Both the position numbers and the translations under genes were made by a program. From positions 806,001-870,000 of the forward strand of contig JAMWBK010000005.1 of assembly GCA_029953675.1 (NCBI GenBank): a stretch of 64,000 nucleotides of DNA, read 5' to 3'. Every line of letters begins with the position of its first letter. The stretch's first letter is position 1. The notes under the pieces were generated by a model. The model had not been told where the DNA came from, searched no databases, and saw only the letters and a list, made by a program, of their open reading frames with translations. This DNA comes from Rhodosorus marinus CCMP1338 (Eukaryota > Plantae > Rhodophyta). Below are positions 23,590-51,120 of this stretch, one piece after another.

Positions 23590-24260
23590 GTGATGGTTTT
23601 ACTTTCTGATTGAATTTACATAATCGGAGGTTGAAAGAAAAAAATCGCAAGGGGAAAAAAAGACTAAGCGCGGCGAAGATCGCGCCTCCAACATCAAAGT
23701 AGCGTTCATACGCCACAGCAAGAAACTTAAACGGCTAAACAACGAGGACAGACTGTCAAGGCGTTCGCGGAACAATTCCCGAAGCCGAGGACCAACGGAA
23801 TCCAGAAACCCAAAGCACTCAATGACCAGAGGCACCAGGCGATGAGCTAGAGCCGAAGCACGAATGGCTGGGGAAGAAAAGGTGCCTGCATATTTCAACT
23901 CTTTGCGACGTCTCAAGAAACTTAACGGCTAAACAACGAGGACAGACAGTGGGCGTTCGCGGAACAATTCACGAAGCCAACGAGAACCAACGATATCCAT
24001 GAACCCAAAGCACTCAATCACCAGAGGTACCAGGCGATGAGCTGAATGAATTGGAGCTAGAGCCGAAGCACGAATGCCTTGGGAAGACAAGTCCCCCCGC
24101 ATATTTCAACTCTTTGCGACGTCTCATATTGGCAGCGGTAAATCCACGGCGCTCTCCCGCAGCCGGCAGATAGCAACGAGCCTGAGGATTAGGAGCAGCA
24201 AGATCAACGTAAGTCATACGGCGGCTATCGTCACAGGTGACCACGAGGTCAGCCACGCGG
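23590..24260 (-). mobile_element. Family B CRE-like non-LTR 3' fragments (RLE domain), two partial copies
   Basis: ADLVVTCDDSRRMTYVDLAAPNP and RRRKELKYAG...LVPLVIECFG, colinear with 34898-35590. Confidence 0.85.
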
Positions 24261-24326
24261 CGTTCATCATTCTGGTAGCCTGCGACAGGCAGGGGCTTCT
24301 CACTTTCAATTTCAAGACTTTTTAAG

Positions 24327-24700
24327 GTGGTGGTTTTACTGGCTTTATTAGCATAGCCTAAAGCGCTACGCAAACCGGTGTTACTAACATCGCCTGAAGC
24401 GCTAGGCAGGGCGTAAAAGGGAACTAGGAACTAGAGAGAAGAGCGTACAAGTCCAAGCGGCGGTGGCGCGCCTCGGCGAGCATGCTGCTAGAATATTGTA
24501 GAGAGCGACGCTTGAACGTCGTAGGAGTCCCAGATTTTCAACAGGATTGTCAGTAAAACATTTCCGCAGCAATTACAAGCTGGGCTTTGCCAGCTGCCTA
24601 AAACTTTCCAGAGTGAAAGGCCGGAACCAGTGATAACTGCCCTCTGCCCAGGGGGACTAGCCATGGTCTCGGCATATCGTCTTTCCTTCAGTCGGCAGGA
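24327..24700 (-). mobile_element. Decayed family A 3' fragments with two 3' motifs and an AAAACCACC tail
   Basis: Variants of the TAGCATAGCCTGAAGCGCTACGCAAGG motif at ~24350 and ~24390, followed by decayed RLE sequence. Confidence 0.7.
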
Positions 24701-26059
24701 CTTTTTTAGTTATTGAGTCTGACGACCTTCTTCCCCATGTTTTAGCTCTTGCCTAGAGCCTCCATCTGAGCTTGAAAGTAAAGTTTTCGCTACGTATAGT
24801 CAACTAGACGGAATTGACTTTCATCGCCTGGTACCCTTGGTAATTGAGTGTTTTGATTGTATGGATTCCGTTGGTTTCCGCTGTCTTCGCGTATCGTTCC
24901 GCGCGCGCCCCTACCGGCTTTCCTCGTTAACCTGTTTGAGCTTCCTGCTGTTGCGTATGAGCGCTGCTTTGATTTTAGAAGCCTGTGGTCTTCGCCTTCC
25001 GTAGGCTTTTGTTTCCCTCGCGGTTGTTTGTTTTAGTCTCCGATAAACACATTCTTTCAATCAACAGGTGTCAGGTGGTACCTACAAAAAAAAAGGGAAA
25101 CGATGGTGGTGCCACCCACACCATGGATTCCATCATAAAGCTTGAGTACAAGCTCACCGGAATTTCAACGGCGGTCCCTATTGTCCACCGGCCCTGGCAG
25201 CGGCCCTAGCGATCTCCCCAAGCCCAAGTACTATTGCCTGTAGCTTTCTTACATATGGCAAAAACTTTTGCTGAAGATGCCTTTGAAGCCCAGAGCGCAT
25301 GTCCGTCTGAGAGGGGTAGAGAAAAAAACAAGAAGGCGAAAGAAAATCCCGAAATCACAGACAGAATTGAATGAGTAACCGCAACCTCACTTTTCGCGGC
25401 CCGCTTTTTCTACCGGACACGAGTGCTTAGAAAAGTGTTGTAGGGGGTCCAAATTCATCCAAATTGAGTGAATTTGACCATTGCAACCACACGCTTTTTT
25501 GCAGCCAAGGCCTCAAACAAACACGCTCCGGCAGCAAGTCTTCAAAGGGGGAAGTTGGGTGGGTGGGTGGCTCAACAGCATCTGACGAGCAGCATTTTGG
25601 CATTCCGATTTCTAAGGGGTGTACCATATCGACTTTAAGATGAAGAGCTACTAGATTCATGAAAAACTACTTATCCAATAAAAACATTGAAAATTGTAAA
25701 TATTTTGCCAATAGATTATTTACACGTGTCGTATATGAGATATTGAATTCTGGAGAACTTCTAGAGTCCTAAACAGGAACAGAAAACCATCGCCGCGGAA
25801 TAGCACTCTTTTTTGTTTGTCCAAAGGATATCTGTGAACATATTTCTTATTGGCAAACTAGCGTGGGGACGAGGGGGGGTGGTGCAATGCGAACTAGCTG
25901 CCAAGAAAATGAAAAAGCGTGCAATCCCTTTTTCTTTTCTCTTTTCTTCAATTGGTCTGTTTCCTCTTCTTTCTATTCGATTTTTTCATCGGAAAAGCTG
26001 ACTTGTATTTTTGAGCAGAGCAAAAAAAAAAGCTGGGTAGGTTTTTACTATCATAGACT

Positions 26060-27394
26060 GGACTTTACTGGACTGGACTTTACTGGACTGGACTTTACTA
26101 GCATAGCCTGAAGCGCTACGCAAGGCGTGAAGATGAACTAATAACTAGGGAGGGAAGCATGCAACCCCAGGCGCCGATGGCGCGCCTCGGAAAGCATGTC
26201 GCTGGAATATCGCCAAAGGGAGACACTTAAACGCCTCAAGAGCGCCAAATATTCAGTAGGATGCTCAGCAAAACATTTCCGCAACCACTCTAAACCCGAC
26301 TTATCGACGTGACCAAAGCTTTCCACAATGAATGGCTGGAACCGGTGAGAGCGACCCTCAGCACAAGGCAGACTGGCCATGCTCTCAGCATACCGTCGTT
26401 CCTTAACTCTTCGAAGGGCTGAAGCCGCGGCCCCCCGGCGGCGGGCGGCTGCGGTGAGGTGGGCGCTGGCCACGGGGCAGGTAATCGCAAGGTCCACATA
26501 TGTTGAGCGTCTGGCAGCAGCGTCAGAGACGAGGAGATCGGCTATACAACGGGGCGGTGCAGAGTCCGAGATTGATCTGGGCAGTTCCGACTCAACCTCA
26601 ACCGTATGCCCTATCCGAGTCAAAAATTCGCTGAGGATGTACTTTGAGGCGAGTGTGACGCCTCGTACGGAGACCTCGCAACAGTCCGCAGGAACCCAGG
26701 AAGTGGTAGCCACAAGCGTCAATCCGGCTCTCACATCCCTGACAGAAAGACGGCCGATTAGAGTGCCACGGAGCCTGTGGCAAACCGAGATAGATCCGTG
26801 CGGCAGAACGGAACTGGAAAGCATCGAGACGATGACTCAATGACGACGGTAGAGTGGTTAACCACAAGTGCGAGAGGTGGCCTCCCATGCCGCGGAGACG
26901 AGCGGCAGTGGTAGGCGGCGTGAGAGGAGAATTGAGCATGACTGTGTGAGCGGCACTGTGTTGGCCCCAGGTGAGGCTATGTTGAATCACATCAGTGCGG
27001 GAGCTCCACAATCGGCTCAAACCCGGGTAGTCTGCAACAGGTGACCCGGGGCTAGCCTCTCCGTCATCGGCAAGAACTCGGTCGAGGGGACAATCCTCAA
27101 TCGCTTCAGCTCGTCCCCATAACAGCGCCCTCCAGGAACGAAAGCGGGACCGATTTGCGTCCGGCACGGCGTTGCACCTCCTGAACGCGTGTTGAAGACC
27201 ATCATAAATTGTCAAAAGCGGGGGCGGCAGGGTCACTGGATCCTCGTTGGTCAAAGCTCGAGCCAAGAGGCAGGAACTTCGGATCTGGAAGGTCACCAAC
27301 GTTCGCAGCGCGGTAGCCCAGGAGGCAACCGCCGCTGGCGAGCATACCAGCCCACGGTCTGCGACGCCGAAGCGCTACGCAAGGCGTGAAGATG
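26060..27394 (-). mobile_element. Family A CRE-like element, 5'-truncated, with 10-bp TSD
   Basis: Near-identical to 38720-39990. TSD ATCATAGACT at 26050-26059 and 27395-27404. Tail of AGTAAAGTCC/AGTCC repeats. Confidence 0.92.
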
Positions 27395-27595
27395 ATCATA
27401 GACTTGTGCGATACGAAAGGACGCTGTGACGATAGCCGCCTTACAACATACGTGGTGGTGGTTTTACTACGTTGATTTTGCCGTGCCCAATCCTCAGATT
27501 AGTCGTTATATGACGGCTGCGGGTTAAGTAGCGATTTTCCGATACTGTCCGGGAACGCGACTTGACTACCATACCAGGGGGCCGGCGTATCCACT

Positions 27596-30380
27596 GGGCT
27601 TTACTAGCATAGCCTGAAGCGCTACGCAAGGCGTGAAAAGGAACTAAGAAACTAGGGAGGGAAGCGTGCAAACCCAGGCGCCGATGTCGCGCCTCGGCAA
27701 GCATGCTGCTAGAATATCCACAGGGCGGCACTCAAACGCCGTAAAAGCGCCAAGTACTCAGTAGGATGCTCAGCGAAACATTTCCGCAACCACTCTAAAC
27801 CCGACTTATCCACATGACCAAAGCTTTCCACAATGAAAGGGTGGAACCGGTGGGAGCGACCCTCGGCGTAGGGCAGACTGGCCTTGCTCTCAGCATACCG
27901 TCGTTCCTTCACTCGTCGAAGAGCCCGAAGCGGCTGCCCCTCGGCGGCGGGCGGCAACCGTGAGGTGGGCGCTCGCCACAGGGCATGTAATCGCGAGGTC
28001 AACATATGCTGAGCGTCGGGCGGCAGGGTCTGATACAAGAAGATCTGCGATAAAGCGGGCCGGCGCCGTGTCCGAGACCGATCTGGGTAGTTCCGATTCC
28101 ACCTCAACCGTATGCCCTACCCGAGTTAAACATTCGCTTAGGATGTACTTGAGACGAGTGTGGCGCCTCGTGCGGAGACCTCGCAACAGGCCACATGAAC
28201 CCAAGAAGTGGTAGCCACAAGCGTCAATCCGGCTCTCACATCCCTGACAGAAAGACGGCCGATGAGAGTGCCACGGGGCTTGTGGCAAACCTAAGTAGAT
28301 CCTTGCGGCGGAGCGGAACTGGAAGGCATCGAGACGGTGACCCGGCGACGAGAGTTGAGCAAGATTGCGTGAGCGGCACTGTGTTGGCCCCAGGTGAGGC
28401 TATGTTGAATCGCATCAGTGCGGGAGCCCCACAATCGGCTCAGACCTGGGTAATAGGCAACAGGTGACCCGGGGCTAGCTTCTCCCTCATCGGCAAGAAC
28501 TCTGTCAATGGGTGAGTTCTCAATCGCCTCAGTTCGTCCCCATAGCAGTTCCCGCCAGGAGCGAAAACGGGATCGATTCTCGTCCGGCATGGCGTTGCAC
28601 TTCCGGAACGCCTGTTGTAGACCATCACAGATCGTCAAAAGCTGGGGCGAAAGGGTCACTGGGTCCTCGCTAGTCAGTGCTCGAGCCAAAAGGCAGGCAC
28701 TTTGTATCCGGAAAGTCACCAAGGTACGGAGCGCGGTTGCCCAGGAGGCGACCGCCGCAGGCGAGCAGGCGAGCCCCCGATCTGCGACACCAAATCCCCC
28801 TAAGCGCAACGGTAGAGCGAGCTGGGCACGAATTAAGTCCCTGTCGGGAGCCGCTTCAAGATCGAGGGGTTCATCCAAGAGCGTTCCCCAGTGGTTCAGC
28901 GTCATCTCGTCGGCCTTGGCGGCGATCCACGCACCCCAGCCGGGTGGTAGGCTACGCAACTAGTAGTTGAGTCGGGGACCGGCACAAAAGCGGGAAAGCA
29001 AGCAGGTCGATTGCAGCATGCTGTCTGGAAGGCGCTCAATGGCGTCAGTGAGCTGCTTGTGCCGAGTCAAAACTCGTTCGCAAGAGGCTTGGACGAAGTT
29101 TTTGCTCCTGAAACCGACGCCGTGGTGCTCCAACCCTTCCCGTTGCCAATGGTTCGTAGATTAGATGGCGGAGAGACCATCGAAATTTTCACTTGGAGCG
29201 AGAAAACGACACTTTTCGGGTTCCACCGTCAGACCTACTCCGCGTGCAATCGTTTCGATCTGGGTGAACCCCCGAGTCAGAGTTTCAAGGGCGCCCAGGA
29301 AGGTCACGTCGTCGTGATAGGCGTAGATACGAAGAGCCGGCACCTCAGTCGCGAGACGCAGGAGAACGAGCTGCAAGGCACAAGCGTGAATTAGAGGCCC
29401 ACAAAGATCGCCTCATGGACTCCAGTATGTGCTTGGAAAACAATGCCCTCCCTAGTCCAGTAGGGGAGGTTCCCCCTTCCGTAAAGACTAGAGAGGAAGG
29501 CCACACCTTCGGAAAAACCCGTCGGATCACCTCCAACGCCTGCGTCCGCGAGACGCTGTTGAATGCGTTTCGAAAATCAACCACCAAAACTCCCTAGTCC
29601 GGCCTACAGGCACGCTCCACTCGATCCCATGGGTGATCAATTCGCAACCCCCCGAAAATCCCACCCCCCACTAGCAAAGGCGCCATAAAAGCCGTGACCC
29701 GCTGGCGAAGGCGTTGGCATAGCCACCTTCCAGCTAGCTTCCGTAGGCTCTCGAACATACCGATCGGCCGGAGACGCGGGTGGGCCGGCTGATGACCAGG
29801 CTTCGTGAGCAAGCAAGGTTGTGCCCTTCGGAGATGTTCCCATGGGGCAGACGCACCCGATGTGCCCTGGAACAGTTTGTTCAGGATCTTGAGCAGCGCG
29901 CTCCGGCAAGGCTTGCCCAAGGCCTGCAATAATTCGGTTCGAAGCCATGGGGCAGCGTCCACGACGCGAGGTGCGAAGCAAATCCTCCAGATCAGACTCG
30001 TTGAGACTCAGGTCGATTTGAAACCGTGCCAACTCCGGACGGTCCAAGAATGCCTCGAATTCGGGTAGCAAGTCCACGTCGGAAGAGGGGAACAAAGATG
30101 ACACCGTCTGGGCGAGACTTTCTTCGTAGGGGAGGACAGGCGACTGGCCCTCCAGAACTCGCGCCGCTCGACTCAAGTCTCCCACCGCTACCAATTCCTG
30201 TACTCGAGCCGTCAGAGGCGAGGCGCTTCCAGCCCTGGTCTGACGAACGGATGGTTCCAACGACGCCAAGTAGCTTTGCTGCAACACCTCGAATTCCCCT
30301 TTCAGGAACATGGCAAGCCGATTTCGGACACGCCATCTGCGCTCCGGCGTGTGAGTTGGGGCCAGAATCAGGCGCGTCAT
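27596..30380 (-). mobile_element. Family A subfamily 2 element (RT + CCHC + RLE), decayed
   Basis: LRPIGMFESLRKLAG, VVDFRNAFNSVSR, AYHDDVTFLG, QLALPLRLGGFG, CQGC...H...C and ADLLV...YVDLAI, broken by stops, frameshifts and an internal deletion. Confidence 0.92.
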
Positions 30381-32480
30381 GTCTTCTAGTATGCTCCTTA
30401 CCTTCTCTGCTTGTTTTAACTACCTTCGCTGCCCCAGTCTGTGTTGACCTGAAGTGCCACGCAGGGTAATGCGAACTAGGAAAAATAACTACCGCGCAAT
30501 CCGAGGCCGGATACTATGCTGCTAGGGTGCCTTTTCTACTTGTTTTAGTCTTGTGTTATAGCGCCGGAATCTTTTCGTTTGACATTAGAGTTCCGAGTGT
30601 TGCTATAGGGCGCCATTGAACCCCCGTAAGAGAAATAGATAGATACTCGGAACTTCGTTTAGCAGATATTCTCAGGATGGTCACTAGCACATTTGCGTAG
30701 CAACTCCAAGTTTGATTTTTGGAGGTTGCTCCGTCTTTCGCGATAAGCCAGACGATATCTTCTAACGTTTTCCAGCTAGACGGATCCCGTTCGAGTCGAA
30801 GGAGGTATCTCTCCAGTAAGCCGTGTCGTTGTGGACACATGCACGAGCGGGTAGTGCCTCTTCGACACGAACGGGATCCATCTAGCTGGAAAATAGTAGA
30901 TCGGCCTAGTTCAAAAACACACAAAGATGTCGCCCCCTCATCTCCCAACCTATTTGTTCCGGGAAAAAGAAAAAAATCCGTTGCAAAAAAACTCTCAAAA
31001 CCGAGGATTTTTCATCTGCGTCCCTAGTTTCAGAGTTCAAAGTTCTCTTCTCTCCGGTTGTGCACTCCCCAGCTCGTCAAAGGAGAACTCGAGCAGGCAC
31101 GGACGTTTTGCAAGAAGCTCTCTCTTGGGACTCGTGTCGTGTTTCATTCTCGGGCTTCTGTCAGCCGCCTGTACGAACTCGCTCGTCCGTGTTCCCTTGA
31201 GAAAATGTTACGCCATGGGCGGTATAGCACGCTGCCAACGTCTCTACATGCCATCTTCAGCGACTGCGAGGTTCGCTCCTGCATACGGACCAACATGGAC
31301 CTAACTCAACCCAGGGGGCATCAAACTAGCAGGACCACAGAAGTTGTCTGAGGTCCATGTTTGCGAGCTGATGGTCAAGTTTGGGAGCAGGTTATTTTTG
31401 CCATTGGCCTCGTATCATTCGTTTTGGAGAGCCCGTTAGAGCTGTGTCACACGTATCCTGAGCCTCCTGAAGCATACGTTAGGACCTGTTATTGAAAGGT
31501 ACCACCTCCGAGCCGCCACCACCGCTTCTACTATCAGCAAAACCACAACCACTGCAGGACTTGCCCAAGGCGTCAAACGAGTTGCCAATCTGGCCTTTTA
31601 TTAGCCAGACTCACAGTGTATGGTTTTTTATTTGTACCTTGACATAGTTGTCCGATAGCACGATACTTGTCGGAGGCATCCCAGCACCGGCACAATCCAA
31701 CCATTGAGGATGACCAGCTAAGAGGCCTGAGAGCCTCTGAACAACGATGACCTCCGTGCGCCTGTCTTGTTGGTTCCATTTTCCTCGAATGTCTGGGTGC
31801 CGAGGTGAGATCCCAGGACAAGGGGCTTGGGTGTGATGCTGGACCGGTTTTTACTGTTTAGAGCGTAATATTAGTCTGGGGTTGTGTGGTCGTGCGGCGC
31901 TGCGGTAAGTAGCTGCCGAATAAAGGCTACAGGCTTCATGTATCGTGACGGTGCCATAAATAATTTTCTGAGCCCTCCCCTCTCGAGGCTCGCGGTCTCC
32001 TCAATCCGCTACTCAGTGGTTTTACTACATAGACGAAACTTGTTCGCTTGCGTTGATCGAGCAATCTATATTTGTACGAGCTATGTGCGCTTAATTTAAG
32101 TATCCTGGGTTGTAAAAAGTGCTCGGTTTAGTTGTCAATTTCACACCCTCCTCAAGAGTAGTCGATAGCCTGTCCGTGATCGAACCGCTCCCATCTCACT
32201 CTCCTTGCCAGAAAGCTGAATCTCCAGCGACTTAATAAGAAGAACTAGAGAAAAATCCAAGCCTGAATTGTGAGTATTGGCTGAGAGAGAAGAGTGCCAA
32301 GGATGTGTGGCAGTCGTGTTCTGGACCTCCACTTTGTTGTCCTTCCGGTGTATCCGCTCCATTATCGGATAACGGGATAACAAAAAGAAATATACTTTGC
32401 ATATGGAGATTACTTTAGCACGGATTTCCAAATCTGCAAAAAACATTTCAAAATACATTTTGAAAGCGTAAGTCTCCAGA

Positions 32481-33030
32481 GTCGGAACTGCCCAGATCAA
32501 TCTCGGACTCTGCACCGCCCCGTTGTATAGCCGATCTCCTCGTCTCCGACGCTGCTGCAAGACGCTCAACATATGTGGACCTTGCGATTACCTGCCCCGT
32601 GGCCAGCACCCACCTCACCGCAGCCGCCCGCCGCCGGGGGGCCGCGGCTTCAGCCCTTCGAAGAGTTAAGGAACGACGGTATGCTGAGAGCATGGCCAGT
32701 CTGCCTTGCGCTGAGGGTCGCTCTCACCGGTTCCAGCCATTCATTGTGGAAAGCTTTGGTCACGTCGATAAGTCGGGTTTAGAGTGGTTGCGGAAATGTT
32801 TTGCTGAGCATCCTACTGAATATTTGGCGCTCTTGAGGCGTTTAAGTGTCTCCCTTTGGCGATATTCCAGCGACATGCTTTCCGAGGCGCGCCATCGGCG
32901 CCTGGGGTTGCATGCTTCCCTCCCCAGTTATTAGTTCATCTTCACGCCTTGCGTAGCGCTTCAGGCTATGATAGTAAAGTCCAGTCCAGTAAAGTCCAGT
33001 AAAGTCCAGTAAAGTCCAGTAAAGTCCAGT
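32481..33030 (+). mobile_element. Family A 3' fragment (RLE) with long (AGTAAAGTCC)n tail
   Basis: Near-identical to 39497-39990; tail at ~32970-33030. Confidence 0.92.
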
Positions 33031-33039
33031 CTCATGGTG

Positions 33040-33570
33040 GTTTTCCTGGTTTTTATTGTGTTTTTTACTGATTTTTATTGGCGTAGCCTAAGGCGCTACG
33101 CAAGGCGTGAAGGGAACTAAGAACTAGGTAGGGAAGCGTGCAAACCCAGGCGCCGATGGCGAGCCTCGGCAATTATGCTGCTATAGTATCGCCACAGAGA
33201 GACACTTAAACGGCGTAACAGTTCCAAATATTCGGTAGGATGCTCAGCGAAGCATTTCCGCAACCACTCCAAAATCGACTTCTTCACGGGACCAAAGCTT
33301 TCCGCAATGAAAGGCTGGAACCGGTGGGAGCGACCCTCTGCGCGAGGCAGAATGGCTATACTCTCAGCATGCCGTCTTTCCTTCACTCGACGAAGGGCCG
33401 AAGCGGCTGCCGGCGGCGTGTGGCAGCAGTGAGACAGCCGCTTCGTGGGCGCTTGCCACGGGGCATGTGATCGGGAGGTCCACATATGCTGAGCGTCCAG
33501 CGGCAGCGTGGGAGACGAGGATATCTGCGATACAGCGGGGCGGCGCCGTGTCCGAGACTGATCTGGGGCA
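33040..33570 (-). mobile_element. Divergent family A 3' fragment
   Basis: ALRRVKERR...FQPFIAESFG...EARHRRLGLHASLPSS plus the 3' motif. Confidence 0.85.
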
Positions 33571-40791: not shown

Positions 40792-42110
40792 ATGAATGAA
40801 TTTGTTTAATCGGAGGCCGAAAAAAAAACCGAGAGGAAAAAAAGACTACTGGCGGCGAAGATCGCGCACCTCCAACATCAAACGTTCATACGCCACAGCG
40901 GGAAACTTAGGCGGGTAAACAACGAGGAGAGGCGGTCAGGGCGTTCACGGAATAACTCCCGAAGCCAATGAGAACCACAGAATCCATAAACCCAAGCGCT
41001 CAATGACCAGAGGTACCAGGCGATGAGCTGAAGCAGAACCGCGAATGGCTTGGCCAGAAAAAAAAACCGCGTATTTCACTTCTTTGTGACGTCTCACAGT
41101 GGCAGGCGGCAACTCCACGGCGCTCTCGCGCAGCCGGCGAATAACGGCTAGCCTGAGGATTAGGAAGAGCAAGATCAAAGTACATCGTTCGGCGGCTACC
41201 GTCACGGTTACCACGAGGTCAGGCACTCGGCATTCGTCGTTTTGGTTGCCTTCGACAGGCTGGGGCTTACCACATTCAATTTCAATTTCGTCTCGCCGTA
41301 CTGCAGGCCATATTTCGCGGTACAACACGTTCAAGACAGGCGTATGTCGGCGGGTTCGGGCGCCTTTCACAGCCGGGCAGCTGGCGAGAAGGTGGGTTTC
41401 TTCGTTCTGAGAGCATAAAGGGCATGGATAACCCACATCGGAAGGCCAAGGCGGCTAATTCAATCCTAGGTACAAGCAGAAGAGAAGCGCGCACTTCAGA
41501 ATACCTGAGCCAAGGCGGGAAAACTTGGAACAGTGGTGAGCCATTGCAAGCTGCGACAGCCCCACAGATTCCGCGGGTGAGCGCGAGCACGAGGACAGGA
41601 GACATTTTGCGCCAGAATTCGGGCGTAAGCAGCACGGTACAAACCCAAGCACATGTGAGGGAAGCAACAACAATGCGAAGAAAAACAGGCATTACCCTAA
41701 AATCCAGTCAAACAAATCCAAAGAATCGGAGAAGCCACAAAAAGCCAAGCTGACCGCAAATGACAAGCGAGAAGGTCAGAGGATTTTGTGCTTACTGATT
41801 TCAACTTGTCTCGTCAACTTCAGCTCACGAGTTCATGACCAAGTCGCCGTTCTATGGGTCGAAGTTCGTGGTACAACTCGTTCAGGATCCGCGTATGTCA
41901 GCTGTAGGTCCGAGTGCCTTTCACTGTCGGGCAGTTGGCGATCAGGTAGGCTCCAAAATCCGCCGTGTCTTCGTTATGAGAGCATGCAGGGCAGGGCGAA
42001 CCCGGCTCGGGAGGCCAGGGCGGCTGATGCAATCCTAGTTACAAGCGCAGAGAAGTGGTGGTTGTGGTTTTCAGGGTGGTTTTACGCGCACTTCGAAATT
42101 CGTGAGCGTG
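40792..42110 (-). mobile_element. Decayed family B copies
   Basis: CPLCSQNEETHLLASCP...VPDLVVT...LVPLVIE. A second B-like knuckle region lies at ~41980-42110. Confidence 0.75.
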
Positions 42111-42282
42111 AGGGGCGGAAAATCTGGAACTGTTGTTGGTAATTGAAGCCGAGGTAACACCGCAGACTCCGCAGGGGAGCACAGTCATGCGGAAAGGAGA
42201 CAACTTGCGAAAGAAGCTGACCATAGGCAGCGCGGCGCAAGTCCCAATGAACGGTGTTTTCGGGTGTTTTCGAGGAATGCAT

Positions 42283-42350
42283 GAACTGGTTTAACCGGAG
42301 ACTGAAATAAAAACCCAGAGGAAAAAACGACTATGCACGGCAAAGATCGC
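42283..42350 (-). mobile_element. Family B 3' tip (~70 bp) abutting the U2 5' end
   Basis: Reverse complement GCGATCTTTGCCGTGCATAGTCGTTTTTTCCTCTGGG...CTCCGGTTAAACC matches family B stop and 3' UTR. Confidence 0.75.
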
Positions 42351-42600
42351 TCGTCTTCTCGGCCTTTTGGCTAAGATCAAGTGTAGTATCTGCTCTTTCA
42401 AGTGTAACAACGTCATGCATCTAAATTTTAGATGCTTTTGTTACAAATACTAACTTTCCTGGTGGGGTTTATGTTTGTTTAGGGGCTTGCCACGCCCGTA
42501 ATACTAACTTTCCTGGTGGGGTTTATGTTTGTTTAGGGGCTTGCCACGCCCGTTTACCGCGCTTTGCTCAGATTTTGATCGCATTCTGTTTGGGAGCACC
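42351..42600 (+). ncRNA. U2: U2 snRNA gene or pseudogene with a 54-bp internal tandem duplication
   Basis: CTTCTCGGCCTTTTGGCTAAGATCAAGTGTAGTATCTG is the invariant U2 5' end with branch-recognition GTAGTA at 42383-42388. Loop TGTAACAA has its complement TTGTTACA at 42438-42445, and a IIb hairpin GCATCTAA/TTAGATGC is present. Length is ~196 nt after removing the duplication 42446-42499/42500-42553. Confidence 0.9.
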
Positions 42601-42639
42601 GCTTTTACTCCCCTCCTCGTGACTCCCTGCAATGCTCGT

Positions 42640-44255
42640 TGTTGTTTTATCGATATTGTTGCAATCAGCGGGTCATCTATTGGTTCCGCTCGCTCCCGAC
42701 TCACTGGGGCCGGTGGCTGGCAGCCCGTGCCAACGACAAGAGCTTTGGTGAGCTGGGATATTTCTTAGATGAGGAGCCGGGTCATCTTCCGCGCCCCACC
42801 TGTAATGTCGGTCGCGCCAAATTGGGCCTCCCCCTACATCTGGGCGGTCTGGGCCTCTGTAACCGAGCTGCTATCCAACAACGGCCGTGCTCGGGTCTTG
42901 GGGCACCGCCTTCCCGACATTGGGTGCGTTGGGCGTGTCAAGTTTCCGAAATCTGGAGGCAATCTTTCCAGCGAGTCCGAGATTTGTTTCTCGAGCTCCA
43001 ATCGGCGATGTCATCCTGCACCAGTCTCCTTGCCGACCTACACCTACATCTAGCTGGCGGCTGGCTGGCTGGTGAGCCGCTTTTCGCGTGCTTGTGGCCT
43101 CGCGACCCGAGCATCTGCTGGTCCTGTACCTTCCGCGCTTGATCTTGTGGTGGCTGAGGAAACAGAGGCCCCTCGAGATCCTCCTGATGATGGACCGGGC
43201 TCTGGCTTGAAGTCGCGTCAGCGCACGCACGGATAGTTTGCAAAACACCCTATGTTGGGACTTGCACCTACGGCCGACTTCTCGCACAGATGGTCTCATG
43301 TTCCCGAGACCGCGCCCACCTGCGTAGTCTTGGGGAATGTATTAGCTCCTAGTGGTTCATGATCCCGCTTTTCCGCCACTCGCACTCACAGATTTCGAAG
43401 TGCGCACTTCCGTACGCTTATACATCGGATTGCATCAGCCGCCCTGGCCGTCCGAGATGGGGTCGCCGTACCCTCTATGCCCTCAGAGCGAAGACACCGC
43501 GGATTTTAGAGCCCATCTGCTCGCCAGCTGCCCCACTGTGAAGGCGCTCGAACCAGCCGACTTACGAATGAATTTGTTTATTCGGAGACTGTAAGAGAAA
43601 ACCCCGAGGGGAAAACAAAGACTATGCGCGGGGAAGATCTCGCGTCTCAAATATTAAAGCAGCGTTCGTACGCCACAGCAAGAAACTTGAAGGGGTAATA
43701 ACGAGGAGGGACGGTCAGGGCGTTCGCGGAACACTTCGTGGTCACCTGTGATGATAGCCACGGTACGATGTACGTTGATCTTGCTGTTGCCAATCTTCAG
43801 GCTAGTCGTTGTTTGCCGGTTGCGGGAAAGCGCCGTGATTTTCCCGCTGCCAGTATGAGACGCCGCAAAGATTTGGAAGATGCGGGGGTTTTGTCTTCCC
43901 CAGATTTTCGTGTTTCGGCTCTAGCTCATCAACTGGTACCTCGGCATTGAGTGCTTTGGTTTATGGATTCCATTGGTTCTCGTTGGCTACGGGAATTGTT
44001 CCGCGAACGCCGTAACCGTAAGCTTTACCGTCTCTCCTCGCTCTTTACCCGTTTAAGTTTCTTGGTGTGGCGTATGAACGCTGCATTGACCTTGGAGGCG
44101 CACGATTTTCGAGGTGCACGACTTTCGAGGCGCCATAGTGCTTTCCCCCTCCGGAGTTTTTTCCTTCAGTCTCTCATTAAAGAAATTCATTTCAATTCAA
44201 GCAACTAAAAATATATTCAATTCAAGCAACTAAAAATATATTCAATTCAAGCAAA
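42640..44255 (+). mobile_element. Decayed family B-like element with antisense B 3' piece inside and an expanded 25-bp-unit tail
   Basis: LGLPLHLGGLGL, VRLYIGLHQPPWP, VTCDDSHGTMYVDLAV and a B-type 3' end. Tail repeat TTCAATTCAAGCAACTAAAAATATA at 44191-44253. Confidence 0.75.
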
Positions 44256-44557
44256 CAAATTCATTCAATTATAGCAAATTGTGGACAACTCAATAAGCCA
44301 ATATTCATTCAAAAACTGAATACCGCGATTGTTAAGAATTATAAGCCAAATTGTGAGCTACAATTTAATATATTTTAGTAGATATTTTTTTTAGTTTGTA
44401 TTCGATTGATTTTGTTTTAACCGCTCTCCACCCTCCCACCCCCCCCCCTGGCGGGCCCCGCGGAGAAGTACTGTCTTGAAGAAAATGGAGGAGAGGGGGG
44501 GGAGGGCGGTGGGCGAATATTCCCCACAGATGCCAATGAGCATTTTTTTATGAGACT

Positions 44558-44921
44558 GGACTTTGGACTTTACTAGCATAGCCTGAAGCGCTACGCAAGG
44601 CGTGAAGATGAACTAATAACTAGGGAGGGAAGTATGCAACCCCAGGCGCCGATGGCGCACCTCGGAAAGCATGTCGCTGGAATATCGCCAAAGGGAGACA
44701 CTTAAACTGGACTTTTTTTAACGCCTCAAGAGCGCCAAATATTCAGTAGGATGCTCAGCAAAACATTTCCGCAACCACTCTAAACCCGACTTATCGACGT
44801 GACCAAAGCTTTCCACAATGAATGGCTGGAACCGGTGAGAGCGACCCTCAGCGCAAGGCAGACTGGCCATGCTCTCAGCATACCGTCGTTCCTTGTGGCG
44901 ATCCCGCCACAAGGAACGACG
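44558..44921 (-). mobile_element. Family A 3' fragment with fold-back 5' junction
   Basis: Near-identical to the end of ORF2 and the 3' motif. Perfect 17-bp hairpin at 44884-44921. Confidence 0.9.
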
Positions 44922-45029
44922 CATTCGTTTGGTTGTTCATATTGGTAGTGGTGGTTTTACTCGCAAAACTCGTTTGGTAGTTTTGGCGGGTTGTTTTGGT
45001 TGCACGTTGGTGGTTTTTTTACTGCTGGT

Positions 45030-45800
45030 CATGGGTTATTAGCATAGCCTGAAGCGCTACGCAGGGCGTGAAAGGGACAAATGAGCTAGGGAGAAAACTT
45101 GCAAACCCAGGCGGCGATGGCGCACCTCGGCGATGCATGCTGGTAGAATGCCGCTACTAGCATAGCCCGAAGTCCTACGCAGTGCGTAAAGTGGAACTGG
45201 GAATTAGGGAGAACAATGTGCCCCCATGCGGCGGTGGCGCGGCGAGTATGCCGCTAGAATATCGCCATTTTGCGACACTTAAACGGCGAGGGTTGCCAGA
45301 TATTCGTCAGCATGGTCAGTGAAACTTTTCCACAGCCACTCCAAGCGGAAGTTTTCCGCGTGCCCAAAGGTGAAAGGCTGGAGTCTGTGAGATCAGCCCT
45401 CAGCCCGGTGGAGACTGGCCATGCTCTCTTCGTACGATCGTTCCCTCAGTTGGTGCAGTACAAAAGCTGCGAACCCCCGCCGGAGGGGCAGCTGGGAGAT
45501 AGGCGCTTTACACACGGCCAGTAACAGCGAGATCCAGTTGAAATATGCGGGGCTTCGTCTTCCCCAGGCATTCGTGCTTCGGCTCTAGCTCATCGCCTGG
45601 TACCTGTGGTCATTGAGTGCTTTGGGTTTATGGACTCCGTTGTTTCTCGTTGGCTTCGGGAATTGTCCCCCGAACGCCCTGACCGTCTGTCCTCGTTGTT
45701 TACCCGTTTAAGTTTCTTGCCGTGGCATATGAAGGCTGCTTTGATATTTGAGGCAAGCGATCTTCGCTGCCAGCACAGTCCTTTTACCCCTCGGTTTTTT
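45030..45800. mobile_element. Stacked decayed family A 3' ends (minus strand) and a family B 3' fragment (plus strand)
   Basis: 3' motif variants at ~45040 and ~45157; VIECFGFMDSVVSRWLREL at 45606. Confidence 0.75.
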
Positions 45801-46079
45801 TTCTTTCAATCTACTATTGGGCAAATTCAATCAGGCACAGTACAAAGAAGTGTAAAAAAGTGTAAAATTCTCCGGAGGGTATCACATATAAGTATAGAAG
45901 TGGAGTCCCTCCCCCGGTGGCAAGGGGTGCGGGGGACTCCAACGGTGTGCGCTGGATGTGGCCTTTGGAACGTCCTGGGATGAGTGGCAATGTATCCGGT
46001 CTCAATCTGTAGTTCTCAAATTACGTATCTGGTTCTTGCTTAATTTCGATAAAAATCGATCGATTCAGCCATCACTCTA

Positions 46080-48050
46080 TCACACCCCGAACAGATTTCG
46101 TCGTGCCTTCGCTGCCATATGAATGAATGGTGCCATAAGGGTCATTATGCTAATAAAACCAACCATAAGCGTCGAAGTCTGGCTGCGGTGGAAACTGTGT
46201 ATACGATTAGTACCATGCGATGTCCATATTTCCGGTATCGGCAAGCCCAACAGCTGCCGTATACGCTTCTGTTCCGCTGAACTCAGGCTTTTCGGCCCGG
46301 GCGTCAGCATTTCCCGTGACCACGCTCCCGCTTTGGCTCCCGCTGCTGCCCGAATTCTGGTCCGACCTTCAGGAGAAATTGCTTGCGGGAAACCAGCATT
46401 TGGAAAGCTGCATTGTGTGCCTCTCTTGCGAGGATTTGTTGAAATGAACCATGTTTCCAAGCTGAGGGATCGGCTTCTTCAGCTCCTTGGGCGAGTTCCT
46501 TCCTCTGCTTCAGGGTGGCAAGGTTCTTGATTCGTACAGGCGCCTCCGGACGCAGTGTGTATTGTGTGTGCTGCGGCGGACGCCCGGATTTGGTTAGGAA
46601 GCCGTGCTGTTGAGCATTGGATTCTCCTCAGCGTGCGTGTATCTGGGGCCTCTTCCGTGGATGATTGCTTTTGGACCTCGGTGAGCTATTGTCATTCGCC
46701 GTGAATCCCTTGGAAAGTTTCCCTCCAGGCCGAGTAGAAAGCGATAGGCTGGATCCGTTGTCTGGTAGCGAATCCCAGTCTACGCCATCGACAGGGGAGT
46801 GCAATCTGGTCAAGCGTCGGTTGTAGGTAGTCTTAGTCCTCGATGGCCATAGTGGTGAGGGCTCCAAATAAGATATCGAGGTGACAGCGCGTCAGGGCGT
46901 CCGCCTCACATGCAAGTGTTCTTCCAAAGGGGTAGGCGAGGCAGCGTAGAAAGTAGTCCAGGCGTGATTCAGCACAATACCGGAACAGGGCCAGTTTCGT
47001 AGTCAGCTCCTCGGGGGGCAGGTGCAGTATCTCCTTAATAGTTTCTCGTGCCTGTTTTGTAGCTGGCGGCACTCTCTTTGGACGTAAGGGCGTGTGCCCA
47101 TCGGTATGGACTGGATGGTAACTCCTTCTCGCGTCGCCGTTACTGCAGGGGTGTCGCGGCTGAGCAGTCGAGGCGTAGTCAGAATTGTGCCGTAGAAGGT
47201 CCACTTGGCAAGCTGTAGTCGGGCTCCAAGGGAGGTGAGCAGAGTCCGACCCCTGTGTAGTGAATCTTTCAGCAGTTGTAGCGGTCCTACGATAGTGATG
47301 TCATCGCGGATCGCCACAACGGTTAGATCAGGGCTTTACTGTGTAATGCTTCCAGAAAAGGAGCCAGGGATAGCGCATGTAAGACCGTCCAAGGGGATCG
47401 CCTTGTTGAACTCCCGCTGTGGCCCGTAGCGTCAGGCAATGGGTATCTCCTTCGTCTGGTCTTAAACAACGGAGGAAAAGAGCCAGAGCGAGCGCAAGTA
47501 GTACAGGGCCGAGCGGATCCCTCTTCTTGTACACCAATGCGCGCACGCAGATGCAGACGGTCGTTGGCGCCTGCTCTGCCTTCCGTCGTGTTGCCATCCT
47601 AGTTGAAGAGGACTGTCAGCAGGCGCAGTTCCCTATGTGAATTGGAATATCAGGTGTAGCTCTGGGAACAGGACTGTAGTATTTTTCGATAGGCGCCGGT
47701 TAACACGATTGAAGGCATTGGACCGGTCATGTTTGAATAGCACGTGCGAAGGTTGATAGAAAAGATGTGCTTGCACTGTGTGTAACGCCTGCTCACAGCC
47801 ATATCTGACAGGTATACCAAACTGTTCAGGTGCCAAAAAGGCCTTCAACCTCTCCGAGACCCCTCGTAGCAGCCACCAGGCAGCGATTTTCCCCAGCACT
47901 TCAGGAATCCTGATCGGTCTCACGCGAATATATCCAGGTGCCTCATTGTCTGCTTCCTCGTTTCCTTGCGGATTCACAAAGTGGATAAGTCTGGTGTGTC
48001 GAAGCTCTAGTCGCAGCATGGGAGAAAAAAACTGCTGGATTGCTTGCTAG
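46080..48050 (-). mobile_element. Family C CRE-like element (RT to knuckle), heavily decayed
   Basis: VRPIRIPEVLGKIAA, QFGIPVRYGCE, DRSNAFNRV, GVQQGDPLG, AIRDDITIVG, RIRAAAGAKAGAW and RQLLGLP. Confidence 0.88.
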
Positions 48051-48869
48051 GCTCCGCAAAAACCGCACCAGTACGTGCTGGTAATATCGCCTGCAGATGT
48101 TCGGCAAGGAGGCCACAAGGTCCAGGGCAGGTGTGGCAGGGCATTCGCGAGATCACGGACAATAGAGATTAGTCGCTGGCCTCTCCCTGGTTCCATGCTC
48201 GGGGTGGACTTGCTCGGACTTACTCGAGAATTCGCTGGAGTTCGGACACGATGTTAGGATGTGCTGGTGCTGCTACTGCTTCCGGGAACAGGATTTCGAG
48301 CGCGGTCCAAGTATTAGCGGTTTACAGTGCTATATCTTTAACATCGAGTCTCTGTGCCCCGTGTGATTTTCGTCCGGAGCTCGCCAATTTAATCAATTGC
48401 TGATTGTGCCAATGTTGGGATATTGACTCGGAGCGCCTCTCGCGTGGAGAGCACTGGGTCGACGCCCTTTGAAGTATTGCCGCCTAGGCTCTCTCGAACT
48501 CGCCATGGAGGAGGCAGCCTGTTTTTTCACAGCATTCGAGGTCAGAATATCAAAAAGCCAGCCAGGGAACTACCGAGATGAACGAGCGTAGGCTGTCTGT
48601 CGCGGTCGTATCCATTGCATACTCAAGTACACGCTGGAAGAGCATGTTCCAGTGCTTCTTTTGCGCTTTTAGAATACATCGAGCCTTTCCGAGACTGTGT
48701 GTGACCCTCTACCACGAGTCCCCATTTTTCCAGCTTTTGATCTAGAAAGGTCTAGCACCCAAACTAACGTAACCGTAACCTTTACTGAGAAGTTGCCTAC
48801 CGCAGCGCAACACTGTTTCTAGTAATATCGAAGGGAAGAAGGTACGGTAACCCCGCTACCTGGGTCTCA

Positions 48870-51120
48870 TGCGACGTTCAAAAGAACAAAACAGGGGACA
48901 GTGGATTCTCCAGGGGGTCCAAACGCTGAGCTCCTACAGCAAGCTCCGCGTTCCCTTGCCCAAGCGTCCGGTTGAGATGAGCGCGCACACCGCTCAACTC
49001 GGCACTGTGGTGTAGTAAATGCTTGCAGCTGTCTCGCAAGAATTCCTGGTTGCCATTTGTCCCGGCCGGCCAAAACTCTCTATCGCAATCGGAATGAGCT
49101 TGTCTTCCGGCGTCGCAATCTACATCGCTTCCTTGTAGTGGAGCCATTTCGTGTTCCCTGCGGTTTTCGCTGCGTAGCCGTTCTCAGCCCCACTACGCCG
49201 CAGGTACTTCGCTTGCAGTGGCGAGATTACCGCCACATCCCGTGATACCTCTGGAAGGTCTTCCGATGGGCAGCAATAATCTCCGGTCGCAGTCCGTAGT
49301 CTTCAGAGCAGCTTTCTGGTTTTTGCTTAATGTCTATAAAGTTCCATCGATTCAGCCATCGCGCCAACTCCGTGCAGATTTCGTCGTGCCTGCGCTGCAA
49401 TCGAGATAGGACAATGGTGAATGAGTTGTACACAATTAGTACCGTGCGTACTATGACAACTAGTACACTTCAGTACACATGCTCAATGAATAAGTTTGTT
49501 GCGCGCTTATCGTTTCCACTCGGAAACACGGTCCATCTTTAGAGCAAACTCCAAACGAACCCTAAACAGCCAAGCCTGCTAGCCAGGGTTTTATAGCAGC
49601 AACTACTTGTGGAGGAACATTCAATAGGCGAAATCAAGGAAATCAATACTAGTTACCGCTGTTCTTGACCTGGTCAACCGTTCGAGGCACTTTTCTCGAC
49701 TAAGTGGACCGTTCACAGCTTCTTTTGTTTCCTTCCGACCGTTCACGACCTCTTTTGGTCCCTTCTAGGACTGTCGTGTCACGTTTCCTACTCAGGACTT
49801 CTGCACGTTCTTCCCTTCCCGCTTTGGGACTCGCAACAAATTTTGTTTAATGCGCAACGGCCGGAATCAGTATTCCCAACAGCTGTCGTATGTTGAGGTG
49901 CATTTCAGGAAGGGGTACAATTTTTTCGCTCGAGCGTCGGCAAATCCGGTATATAGACAGCAAGCCGATCCGGAGCCGGCTGCTGACCGAGTTTGGGCCA
50001 GAACTTTGGGGGGATCTGCGGTGGTTTTTTAGCAAGCGTTAGAATGCGGTATGGGGTTCTTCTCGAGAAAGGGTTTGTTGCAGAGAACCATGATTCCAAG
50101 CGCGAGGGTAGTTTCGTGTAACCGCGTACACTTTACTGAAGAGCTCCCCCAGACTAACGTAACCCCGTAACCCCAAACCTCAGGCGATCCCCTTGGATCG
50201 GTTTGACATGCGCTATCCCTGGCTCCTTTTCGGGACGGATTACACAACAAAGCCCCTGATCTAAGGTTAGTCTGGGGTCACCACTGCCCGACTTCGACGG
50301 GACTATGGCAGCGAAGGCCCGACGAAATCTATACGGAGCTGGTGCGATGGATGAATCGATGGATTTTTATCGAGGTTAAGCAAGAACCTGATAGATGCTT
50401 CGACAACTACAGATTGCGACGGTATATCATGGCCACTCATCCCAGGATGTTCCCACGGTATGCGCCGTATGTGACCGTTACCTCGCCACTGCCGGACAAG
50501 TACGTGAACCGTAGTCGGTCAGAGAATGGGTACGCAGCGAAGCGAGCGAAGACGTGGAGAATTGCACACTACAAAGAAAGGATGTCGGGTCACGTCCGAG
50601 AGTACCACTCTATCCAAAGAGTGGCGGCGTGATATACTCGGACTAGACCAAGGCGATACCCATCGCCTGAAGCTACGGGCCACAACGGGCGTACAACAAG
50701 GCGATCCCCTTGGACCGGTCTTACATGCGCTATCCCTGGCTCCTTTTCTGGAAGCATTACACAGCAAAACCCCCTGATCTAAGGTTAGTCCGCGGTGGTG
50801 GTTTCCAAAGAGTGTACGAGCATCCGAGCTGTCAGCGCATGTAGGACCGGTCCAAGGGGATCGCCTTGTTGTACTCCCGTTGTGGCCCGTATACGGTCCA
50901 TGCGGTTGAACGCATTCTCATGGTCGAGCCGTAAAACGAATGCGTCAGGTTCGCACGAGAGGTGTGCCTGGATCGCATGTAGAGATCGTTTGCATCCACC
51001 GCTATCTCCGAACATATTCGTTCCTTCATATCTATTGCTGTTCCTAGTCCACAGGATAGTCGTTACTTGCCGGCTGCGTGAGAGCGCTGTGGATTTGCCG
51101 CTGCCAGTATGAGACGCGCG
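48870..51120. mobile_element. Scrambled family C RLE and RT fragments in both orientations, plus a short family B piece
   Basis: RRHDEICTELARW...DVAVISPL...KWLHYKE...IPIAIESFG on minus (48900-49430) and a homologous piece on plus (50300-50630). GVQQGDPLGPVLHAL recurs at ~50190, ~50700 and ~50860. Confidence 0.82.

Follow-up and report, generated by a model that had tools for sequence, protein, structure and literature searches.

A gene-free nest of two-ORF R2/CRE-type non-LTR retrotransposons in the genome of the red alga Rhodosorus marinus

INTRODUCTION

The CRE clade of retrotransposons that lack long terminal repeats (non-LTR retrotransposons), which are also called long interspersed nuclear elements (LINEs), to which CRE1/2, SLACS, CZAR, MoTeR, Cnl1, and FoTeR belong, is known for members that are strictly site-specific and low-copy, with spliced-leader (SL) genes or telomere repeats as targets. 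They encode a reverse transcriptase (RT), a CCHC knuckle, and a restriction-like endonuclease (RLE) of the PD-(D/E)xK type, and the endonuclease consensus published for SLACS, CRE, and MoTeR is C[X1-3]C[X7-8]H[X3-4]C[X9-10]RH(D/N)..E..(R/K)PD..X12-14..(D/E) (PMC12857005). In the arrangement of the R2 endonuclease, the catalytic lysine lies in helix 2 (PMC4838377). Here, we describe a 28-kb nest of LINEs with this set of domains in the red alga Rhodosorus marinus, located in a stretch of 64,000 nucleotides of contig JAMWBK010000005.1 (assembly GCA_029953675.1) that is referred to below as the window, and we compare the nest with the described systems that it most resembles.

Two further systems are relevant to LINEs that lie in clusters. 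The L1-type Zepp/ZeppL elements of Coccomyxa, Chlamydomonas, and Chlorella are nearly confined to one centromeric cluster per chromosome. Utopia elements, which belong to the NeSL clade, are RLE LINEs whose 3' end is joined to the U2 small nuclear RNA (snRNA) gene from nucleotide 39; they form arrays, some of which are tandem and combine more than one family (PMC4640811). They carry one to three N-terminal zinc fingers in a single open reading frame (ORF).

R. marinus is a unicellular red alga of the Stylonematophyceae, the genome of which was published in 2023 (PMC10250338). The genome comprises 31.2 Mb with 8392 genes, i.e., one gene per 3.7 kb, in a Nanopore-based assembly with 13 contigs of >1 Mb, six of them telomere-to-telomere (PMC10250338). 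Window position 1 corresponds to position 806,001 of the contig record, and window positions are used throughout unless stated otherwise. From the sequence of the window alone, an earlier reading (the original prediction) had proposed a nest of three CRE-like families that insert next to and into one another, which looked like an undescribed self-clustering safe-haven system and was possibly a centromere or an internalised subtelomere.

RESULTS

Four related LINE families make up a gene-free nest

A profile built from 31 RT+RLE homologues was run on the six-frame translation of the window, and the matches were merged with those from blastn. The profile detected >45 RT/RLE pieces between positions 23677 and 51003 and none in the rest of the window. 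The merged map contained 34 fragments, most of them broken, of four related R2/CRE-type non-LTR families, which together covered 21.5 of 27.7 kb (78%) of a gene-free span at 23440-51127 (829,440-857,127 of JAMWBK010000005.1). This contig is 3,187,197 bp long, and the nest is internal to it, 0.83 Mb from the nearer contig end. The fragments lay in both orientations (22 minus and 12 plus), and the orientation of neighbors showed no bias, 14 of the 31 adjacent pairs being concordant. The predicted nest of approximately 28 kb, with more than 20 fragments of RLE elements beside and inside one another on both strands, was thus recovered.

By length, family A dominated with 12.1 kb in 13 fragments, followed by B (5.5 kb, 14 fragments), C (3.4 kb, 5 fragments), and D (0.6 kb, 2 fragments). 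Amino acid identity was 41% between A and B in the RLE, 29 to 34% between A and C in the RT, and 33% between B and C. Within family A, nucleotide identity to the full A copy separated three subfamilies: A1 (98 to 99%), A2 (82 to 87%), and A3 (68 to 73%). The families A to C of the original prediction are therefore distinct, with A in three subfamilies, and family D comes in addition as the fourth family of the nest. It represents the 5' end and 5' untranslated region (UTR) of a further LINE family, and one of its paralogues, on contig JAMWBK010000013.1, is followed downstream by an ORF1 homologue and then by the N-terminus of an ORF2.

The large A copies had a GC fraction of 0.57 to 0.60, compared to 0.46 to 0.51 in the flanks. 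The CpG observed/expected ratio was 0.87 to 0.98 in the elements and 0.90 to 0.94 in the flanks; there was no CpG depletion in the elements and no sign of repeat decay driven by methylation or resembling repeat-induced point mutation. In the 36.3 kb of flanking DNA, approximately 3.3 kb of element sequence would be expected from the genome-wide density, and a single copy of 183 bp was found. This is an A-like 3' end that stands alone among the densely packed genes of the right flank (54116-54298, plus strand). The earlier statement that the flanks hold only one tiny copy was right for these elements, but it had missed the remains of Ty3/gypsy elements in the left flank (12676-19212), where ORFs for gag, aspartic protease, RT, and RNase H were found together with two LTR-like repeat pairs (12676-12814/17100-17238, 97% identical, and 17694-17865/19041-19212, 92%).

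The near-full-length copy encodes an R2/CRE-type protein

The sole near-full-length copy was an A1 element of 4.43 kb (35590-40019, plus strand), consisting of a 5'UTR of approximately 480 nucleotides (nt), ORF1 (36070-36699, plus; 209 amino acids [aa] from the first ATG), a spacer of approximately 430 nt, ORF2 (37127-39952, plus), a 3'UTR ending in GGCTATGCTAGTAA, and a 3' tail of AGTAA/AGTCC-type 5/10-nt repeats (39996-40019, plus), of which other A1 copies had 2 to 5 units. ORF2 is a conceptual protein of 942 aa with RT, CCHC, and RLE, stitched together from three frames. Two deletions disrupt its reading frame, one of 1 bp within a stretch of C at approximately 37378, which could be a Nanopore error, and one of 2 bp at approximately 39220, which is not present in the sister A1 copy at 26060-27394; with these two frameshifts, the copy is not intact as assembled.

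The RT core of ORF2 (37738-38316, plus) matched Pfam RVT_1 with an E value of 1.4e-15 (ORF 36931-39333), and its translation contained the motifs RPIGMVESLRKL, QVGVGFSGGCE, DFRNAFN, GVQQGDPCGP, and YHDD. In the PDB, the best matches of the RT were R2 proteins (1.7e-14) followed by L1 ORF2p (approximately 1e-7). Identity to R2 was approximately 20 to 25% in the aligned block, and a weak colinear match to the CCHC/RLE region was seen as well. This region (39347-39700, plus) combines a CCHC knuckle with an R2-type PD-(D/E)xK core, recognizable as CX2C..H..C, RTRRH, E, IAD, YVD, and K..RY. In family A, it reads CX2C-X9-H-X4-C-X9-RHT-X19-E-X15-IAD-X14-D, then K..RY, whereas B and a relative (P0001) have (R)VAD and RPD, with K..KY. 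Comparing the A and B copies of the window with the closest database relative, the conserved elements were CX2C..H..C, RTRRH, E, (A/P)D, YVD, and K..(K/R)Y. The published CRE-type consensus was thus matched with three small deviations in family A, i.e., X9 instead of X7-8 in the knuckle, RHT instead of RHD/N, and IAD instead of (R/K)PD. All the RT motifs, the CCHC knuckle, and the RLE quoted in the original prediction were found in the translation.

An AlphaFold2 model of the RLE domain had the expected alpha-beta-beta-beta-alpha order, and R2 proteins were four of the five and five of the seven best Foldseek matches (best probability 0.98); with a low predicted local distance difference test (pLDDT) score of 55 for the model, these matches are supportive only. 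The endonuclease is C-terminal and of the RLE type, and no Exo_endo_phos domain was found in the Pfam scan. The 125 aa ahead of the RT contained one Cys and no C2H2 pattern, and neither zinc-finger nor Myb domains were found in the N-terminus of ORF2.

ORF1 had no Pfam domain. It was 37% identical (E 9e-23) to the ORF1 on JAMWBK010000013.1 and weakly similar (E 0.002) to the ORF1 of a 4.7-kb metagenomic relative. A single-sequence AlphaFold2 model (pLDDT 62) showed a beta-alpha-beta-beta-alpha-beta arrangement followed by long helices, and Foldseek returned matches resembling the RNA-recognition motif (RRM), all of them non-significant. An RRM-like fold is therefore possible at low confidence, and an RNA-binding role for ORF1 is only a guess. 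Together, these results identify the elements as non-LTR retrotransposons with a restriction-like endonuclease.

Insertion footprints and a composite chain with a confirmed empty site

Many copies were 5'-truncated at differing points and shared a common 3' end, and target duplications of 10, 9, and approximately 28 bp were found. A 5'-truncated A1 copy at 26060-27394 (minus), 99% identical to the full copy, was flanked by the 10-bp duplication AGTCTATGAT (26050-26059 and 27395-27404), and approximately 26 nt from its own 3'UTR had been added where its 5' end meets the target. An A3 3' fragment at 40106-40771 (minus), 69% identical to A1, was bordered by an imperfect 28-bp duplication that takes in the end of the adjoining B tail and the core of which is conserved (40078-40097 and 40772-40791). 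At the 5' junction of a further A1 copy (44557-44906, minus), a 17-nt inverted duplication of the first bases of the copy itself (44884-44900/44905-44921) looks like a footprint of the snap-back or twin-priming type.

The third duplication enclosed a composite block. An A2 3' fragment (34119-34473, plus), a B 3' fragment with RLE, 3'UTR, and TTCG-type tail (34474-35589, plus), and the near-full-length A1 element abut directly, all in the same orientation, and form a block of 5.9 kb. One 9-bp duplication, TGCTTTATT, encloses the whole chain (34102-34110, plus, and 40024-40032), and no target duplication was found for A1 alone, for B plus A1, or at the inner junctions of the chain. The chain lies within family D, of which the first 86 nt (40020-40105, minus), the target of both the chain and the A3 fragment, begin directly behind the tail of a B copy on the minus strand, and which becomes continuous with its distal part (33568-34118, minus) after removal of the chain. 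Three D paralogues on JAMWBK010000013.1 are unbroken across this point and have the duplicated bases as a single copy, which confirms the empty site of the chain. All the members are young, as judged from their identity to other copies: 97.2% for A2 (to the copy at 27601-27955), 99.1% for B (to a copy on JAMWBK010000013.1), and approximately 99% for A1. Since the only duplication is the one that surrounds the block, the chain is best explained by template jumping in a single event. On reaching the 5' end of the A1 RNA, the RT would have switched to a B RNA at its 3' end and, after that, to an A2 RNA.

Such arrangements were frequent. We counted at least 10 head-to-tail junctions, in which a 3' end with a short tail is joined to a truncated body, in the window, in a second nest, and in a Rhodosorus-like contig (both described below). 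True nesting was also seen, with B inside B (43564-43737) and with A3 and the chain inside D. The flanks of the element 3' ends were heterogeneous. AGTC(T) was seen at the 3' junctions of four A copies and also within two of the target duplications. Its likeness to the tail unit AAAGTCC would fit a pairing of the nicked DNA with a few bases of the RNA tail. A motif of 4 to 5 nt is, however, far too common to explain the confinement of the elements to nests.

The elements are the dominant repeats of the genome and recur in nests

In the text of the genome paper, repeats are given as 15% of the R. marinus genome, and the source data of its Supplementary Fig. 10 list 4036 CRE/SLACS elements with 2,820,491 bp, or 9.04% of the genome (PMC10250338). 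Of the RepeatModeler families in these data, 24 are classified as LINE/CRE, accounting for 98% of the LINE DNA, and only 2 as LINE/R2; the two youngest LINE/CRE families comprise 471 and 370 kb at Kimura distances of 1.31% and 0.93%, respectively (PMC10250338). At 9.04% of the genome, the elements are the dominant repeat and not a local curiosity, and this table gives independent support to the earlier terms "CRE-like," with which the automatic classification agrees, and "recent activity." The claim that the system is undescribed stands only in part, since the families were catalogued automatically in that supplement, although they were never analyzed in the paper's text (PMC10250338). At the element content of the present nest, 2.82 Mb of CRE DNA corresponds to approximately 130 nests, compared to 13 chromosomes, and one nest per chromosome is therefore impossible unless most copies lie elsewhere.

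A query with the RLE of family B led to a second nest on another chromosome, JAMWBK010000013.1 (1.11 Mb), at 827,723-850,358. Within this stretch of 22.6 kb, we found >20 RT/RLE pieces that belong to the A and B types and lie in either orientation; the nest extends past its end. The locus in the window is therefore not unique, and nests recur. In the annotation of the second nest, three gene models, at local positions 10001-12636, 16717-18094, and 21351-22636, coincide with pieces of LINEs. NDN08_000224, although annotated as a gene, is part of the endonuclease of a family-B element, and its two neighboring gene models lie on A-type RT/RLE pieces.

Several young copies were found. The near-full-length A1 element differed from its sister copy, compared over 26047-27371, by 8 substitutions in 1283 bp (0.6%), and the 99.1% identity of the B chain member to the copy on JAMWBK010000013.1 has been given above. 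Proteins from MMETSP R. marinus transcripts matched A at 71 to 75% identity and B at 84%. Taken as sequence evidence, these values suggest that the families have recently been active and transcribed, and the divergence between the A1 copies and the Kimura distances of the youngest families are in line with the recent activity that had been proposed. The RT queries returned no annotated R. marinus proteins, and a metagenome scan with the A 3' end gave no match.

Relatives outside the assembly differed in their arrangement. The Rhodosorus-like contig Ga0186194_100052 (JGI sample 3300016967, 5040 bp) was 86% identical to A and carried a truncated A copy plus a second A 3' end of 169 bp, with a Fea1-like (low-iron-inducible) gene on one side and a different gene on the other. 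Should this contig represent a transcript, the element and its neighbor gene are transcribed together. In Pyropia vietnamensis (BAAFKR010000030.1, 386,766-411,162 of 428,141), a related RT-RLE element formed a head-to-tail array of at least 3.5 units with near-100% identity, a period of 8.08 kb (one unit of 7.14 kb), and a GC content of 77%, located 17 to 41 kb from the contig end. Relatives in three other eukaryotic contigs were single copies within 21 to 22 kb. Clustering is thus not a universal trait of the family, and it may be common in red algae.

A U2 snRNA gene or retro-copy lies within the nest

The Rfam scan of the window detected a U2 snRNA (RF00004, 42351-42531, 78.6 bits, E 8e-14), and no rRNA, SL RNA, or ribozyme; tRNAs were also absent from the window. 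The 3' half of U2 is present as a perfect 54-bp tandem duplication (42446-42499 and 42500-42553), so that the whole feature occupies 42351-42553 on the plus strand. B fragments abut it on both sides, with a reverse B 3'UTR fragment (42277-42350, minus; blastn) joined to U2 nucleotide 1 and a 5'-truncated B copy (42585-44278, plus; blastn and profile) starting at most 30 bp past the U2 end. Given these junctions, it may be that the U2 copy is not a working gene but a retro-copy attached to a truncated B. No flanking target duplication was found for the U2-B pair, and no further U2 pieces were found in the window or in the second nest.

The Utopia-type junction, with an element 3' end joined to U2 at nucleotide 38/39, was absent, and no element interrupts the U2 copy. 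Telomere-like arrays were not found either, the longest repeat run having approximately 5 units. The original prediction that no known target is evident had therefore overlooked the U2 gene, yet it holds in that no element occupies the Utopia site and neither SL RNA nor telomere arrays are present. Nor do the 3' tails, being short 5/10-nt repeats, point to a microsatellite target.

Other fragments and neighboring genes

The following fragments were identified by both blastn and the profile unless noted. The left edge of the nest consists of three B 3' fragments in series (23440-23555, 23606-23919, and 23914-24322, minus), into which two A 3' ends in series run head-to-tail (24331-24694, minus; blastn), a 43-nt piece and then an A3 piece of 314 nt, followed by a B 3' end on the other strand (24819-25064, plus). 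A degenerate A2 copy of 2.8 kb extends from the ORF2 start codon to the tail (27593-30389, minus). Its similarity to A1 ends exactly at that start codon, and the 2.1 kb upstream of it (30390-32478) had no match to anything; either the 5' module of A2 is an unrelated one, or it is by chance that the copy was truncated at this position. Next to this lies an A1 3' fragment with five tail units (32479-33032, plus; blastn), placed tail-to-tail with an A2-like 3' fragment that has a long, degenerate A-rich tail (33033-33567, minus; blastn). The A2 member of the chain was likewise identified by blastn.

To the right of the chain and the A3 fragment lies a B 3' fragment (40788-41627, minus). The 5'-truncated B copy behind U2 (42585-44278) is an older one, and an inverted B 3' end (43564-43737, minus; blastn) lies inside it and replaces approximately 133 bp. 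The tail of family B is of the TTCR type, and in this older copy it consists of a 25-bp tandem repeat, TTCAATTCAAGCAACTAAAAATATA, with 3 to 4 units (44178-44278), while other B copies have short TTCR repeats. A head-to-tail series of three A pieces follows (44557-45575, minus; blastn), made up of the A1 piece with the inverted duplication, an A 3' end with a degenerate tail of 129 nt (44907-45130, minus), and an A3 piece (45155-45575, minus), and then a B 3' end (45538-45834, plus). The longest C copy (45835-48165, minus) is degenerate and extends from the RT into the RLE, covering profile positions 316 to approximately 940, and four further C pieces lie at 49126-49401 (minus), 50182-50593 (plus), 50631-50782 (plus), and 50788-51009 (minus). 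A B fragment (51035-51127, plus; blastn) marks the right edge of the nest. The segments without a match were 25065-26046, 30390-32478, 41628-42276 (part), 44279-44556, 48166-49125, and 49402-50181. As their GC content is like that of the flanks, they may be old intergenic DNA or unrecognized 5' parts of elements.

Among the neighboring genes, the one at 6790-8403 (plus) encodes a CBS-PB1-TPR protein that is 100% identical to NDN08_001220, and the one at 51809-52879 (minus) encodes a ChaN/Tiki-type haem-binding protein. Both are long unbroken ORFs, compared to a genome mean of approximately 3 introns per gene.

DISCUSSION

We consider it probable that the locus is an ordinary intergenic transposon nest of the dominant two-ORF R2/CRE-type LINEs of this genome. 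At least four such families, with RT, CCHC knuckle, and RLE, would have built it, their copies mostly ending up 5'-truncated and flanked by duplications of 9 to 28 bp. The nest would have grown by insertion into older copies, by insertion a few to a few hundred base pairs from older tails, and by jumps of the RT from the RNA of one element to the 3' end of another, giving head-to-tail chains that lack inner target duplications. The clustering would then probably reflect that insertions into junk are tolerated in a gene-dense genome, and the elements may in addition mildly favor sequence that resembles tails or the chromatin of resident copies. No special chromosomal function need be invoked. 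Several points weigh against this explanation. It is drawn from two loci and summary statistics, the assignment to the CRE clade is taken from the automatic classifier of others, and 22% of the nest has no family assignment. All four young A1 insertions lie approximately 0 to 285 bp from the tail of an older element, and this proximity, together with the AGTC(T) motif, hints at a real preference for sequence or tails and not just at passive survival. The Pyropia array could indicate active self-association in this lineage. Finally, the A2-B-A1 chain could alternatively have arisen by successive insertions into one site, the inner duplications having since been lost.

An active self-clustering system, as originally proposed, is possible. 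The elements might target themselves, with the endonuclease or the priming step preferring resident tails or termini, or a site regenerated behind each tail. The young A1 copies beside older tails, AGTC(T) at four A 3' junctions and in two duplications with its likeness to AAAGTCC, the at least 10 head-to-tail junctions, the perfect tandem array of the Pyropia relatives, and the fact that site-specific Utopia elements also occur in tandem (PMC4640811) all speak for self-targeting. We nevertheless regard it as unlikely, though deserving serious attention, because re-insertion into a regenerated site should leave an inner target duplication, which the verified chain lacks, and because a motif of 4 to 5 nt is too common to confine insertions to nests; moreover, the orientation of neighbors is random (14 of 31 concordant), the relatives in three other organisms are single within 21 to 22 kb, and insertions also occurred in ORF bodies and in the D 5'UTR. 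More improbable still is that nests are functional chromosome landmarks, either LINE-based regional centromeres or heterochromatin islands sought through tail- or chromatin-directed integration; if true, this would be the first CRE-type lineage with a haven of its own making instead of a host-gene or telomere target. For the centromere version, modeled on the green-algal Zepp/ZeppL L1 elements that occur almost only in centromeres, the nest has suggestive features in being gene-free, internal, and made of transposable elements only over 28 kb (38 kb with the adjacent Ty3/gypsy), in mixing old and young insertions, and in having an internal counterpart on a second chromosome. It is hard to reconcile, however, with 2.82 Mb in 4036 fragments, or approximately 130 nests of this size for 13 chromosomes, with an A-type copy occurring singly beside genes and one fragment in the gene-dense flank, and with the lack of any satellite or compositional signature (CpG observed/expected approximately 0.9 to 1.0, as in the flanks), and we think there is little chance that it is correct.

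The remaining explanations appear less probable again. Fungal relatives of the CRE clade are telomere-associated (PMC12857005), the element tails are short, G/T-poor repeats of 5 to 10 nt (AGTAAAGTCC/AAAACCACC) that could in principle mimic a telomere unit, and the Pyropia array lies 17 to 41 kb from a contig end, all of which would suit a subtelomere that was built by telomere-targeting elements of the MoTeR, Cnl1, or FoTeR type and later internalized. Neither the genome paper (PMC10250338) nor the other literature searched states the telomere repeat of R. marinus. With the locus 0.83 Mb from the nearer contig end, no repeat run above approximately 5 units, and a second nest that is also internal, this origin seems very doubtful, and the originally suggested reading as a centromere or internalized subtelomere is unlikely as a whole. 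The U2 copy at 42351-42553 with B fragments abutting both ends, and the spread of Utopia, an RLE LINE, across eukaryotic supergroups (PMC4640811), raise the question of whether a U2 locus was colonized by elements that, like Utopia or Keno, are specific for U2. We see hardly any room for this, since no element 3' end runs into U2 from nucleotide 39, no other U2 occurs in the window or the second nest, ORF2 lacks the N-terminal zinc fingers of Utopia, and the U2 itself may be a retro-copy joined to the 5'-truncated B, for which, however, a flanking duplication was not found. That the nest is an assembly artefact of collapsed or chimeric repeats, for which the Nanopore basis of the assembly and the location of one of the two frameshifts in a homopolymer might be cited, is just as remote: the fragments differ in truncation points, orientations, and ages, their junctions are unique, the longest near-identical stretch is 1.3 kb, the target duplications and the confirmed empty site are internally consistent, and the contig of 3.19 Mb belongs to an assembly with 13 contigs of >1 Mb, six of them telomere-to-telomere.

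The analysis of the nest is relevant in several ways. This is the first anatomy of CRE-type LINEs that make up 9% of the first chromosome-level stylonematophycean genome and that were represented before only by lines in a supplementary table. The chain is a clean composite insertion formed in vivo, and the clean case and the confirmed empty site make it usable for studies of template jumping. For annotation, fragments of transposable elements have been called genes (NDN08_000224), and the U2 copy described here is possibly a retro-copy. Once the centromeres of R. marinus are mapped, the nests will be obvious candidates to look at.

The nest resembles several known systems in part. Like Zepp/ZeppL, the elements form LINE clusters in a small algal genome, the remainder of which is gene-dense. 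The L1-type Zepp/ZeppL elements carry an AP endonuclease and are nearly confined to one centromeric cluster per chromosome, while the R. marinus elements are of the RLE type and approximately a hundred nests are implied. With Utopia, which like Keno is specific for U2 snRNA genes, they share the RLE and arrays with several families, and a U2 gene lies in the nest; they differ from Utopia in the absence of its defining U2 junction and of N-terminal zinc fingers, in having a separate ORF1, and in forming a second nest without U2. R2 proteins (9dou, 9nl2, 9nl3, 8gh6, and 8iby) are the best relatives with solved structures for both RT and CCHC/RLE, and they have the same type of RLE with RH, E, PD, and D and with the lysine moved to the K..KY helix. 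The classic example of end-to-end template jumping is the RT of R2, in line with the chains described above. In contrast to R2, ORF2 of R. marinus has no N-terminal zinc-finger/Myb region, ORF1 is separate, and there is no 28S rDNA target, the Rfam scan having found no rRNA in the window.

Template-switch chimeras, known from mammalian U6/L1 and from R2 in vitro, are head-to-tail with one outer duplication and none inside. The A2-B-A1 chain shares this layout, and U2 plus the 5'-truncated B has the layout of snRNA/LINE chimeras, although no flanking duplication was found. The partners here are mostly other LINE RNAs, compared to those of the U6/L1 type, and the chains are frequent (at least 10 junctions).

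The likeness to the CRE clade lies in the RT, the CCHC knuckle, and the PD-(D/E)xK RLE with the published spacing, apart from the deviations of family A given above, and SLACS and CZAR have two ORFs, as do the R. marinus elements. Compared to the SL genes and telomere repeats used by the known members, no such target is seen in R. marinus, where the elements amount to 9% of the genome and lie in internal nests of several families and occasionally beside genes. A clade best known for strict site-specificity may also be high-copy and nest-forming.

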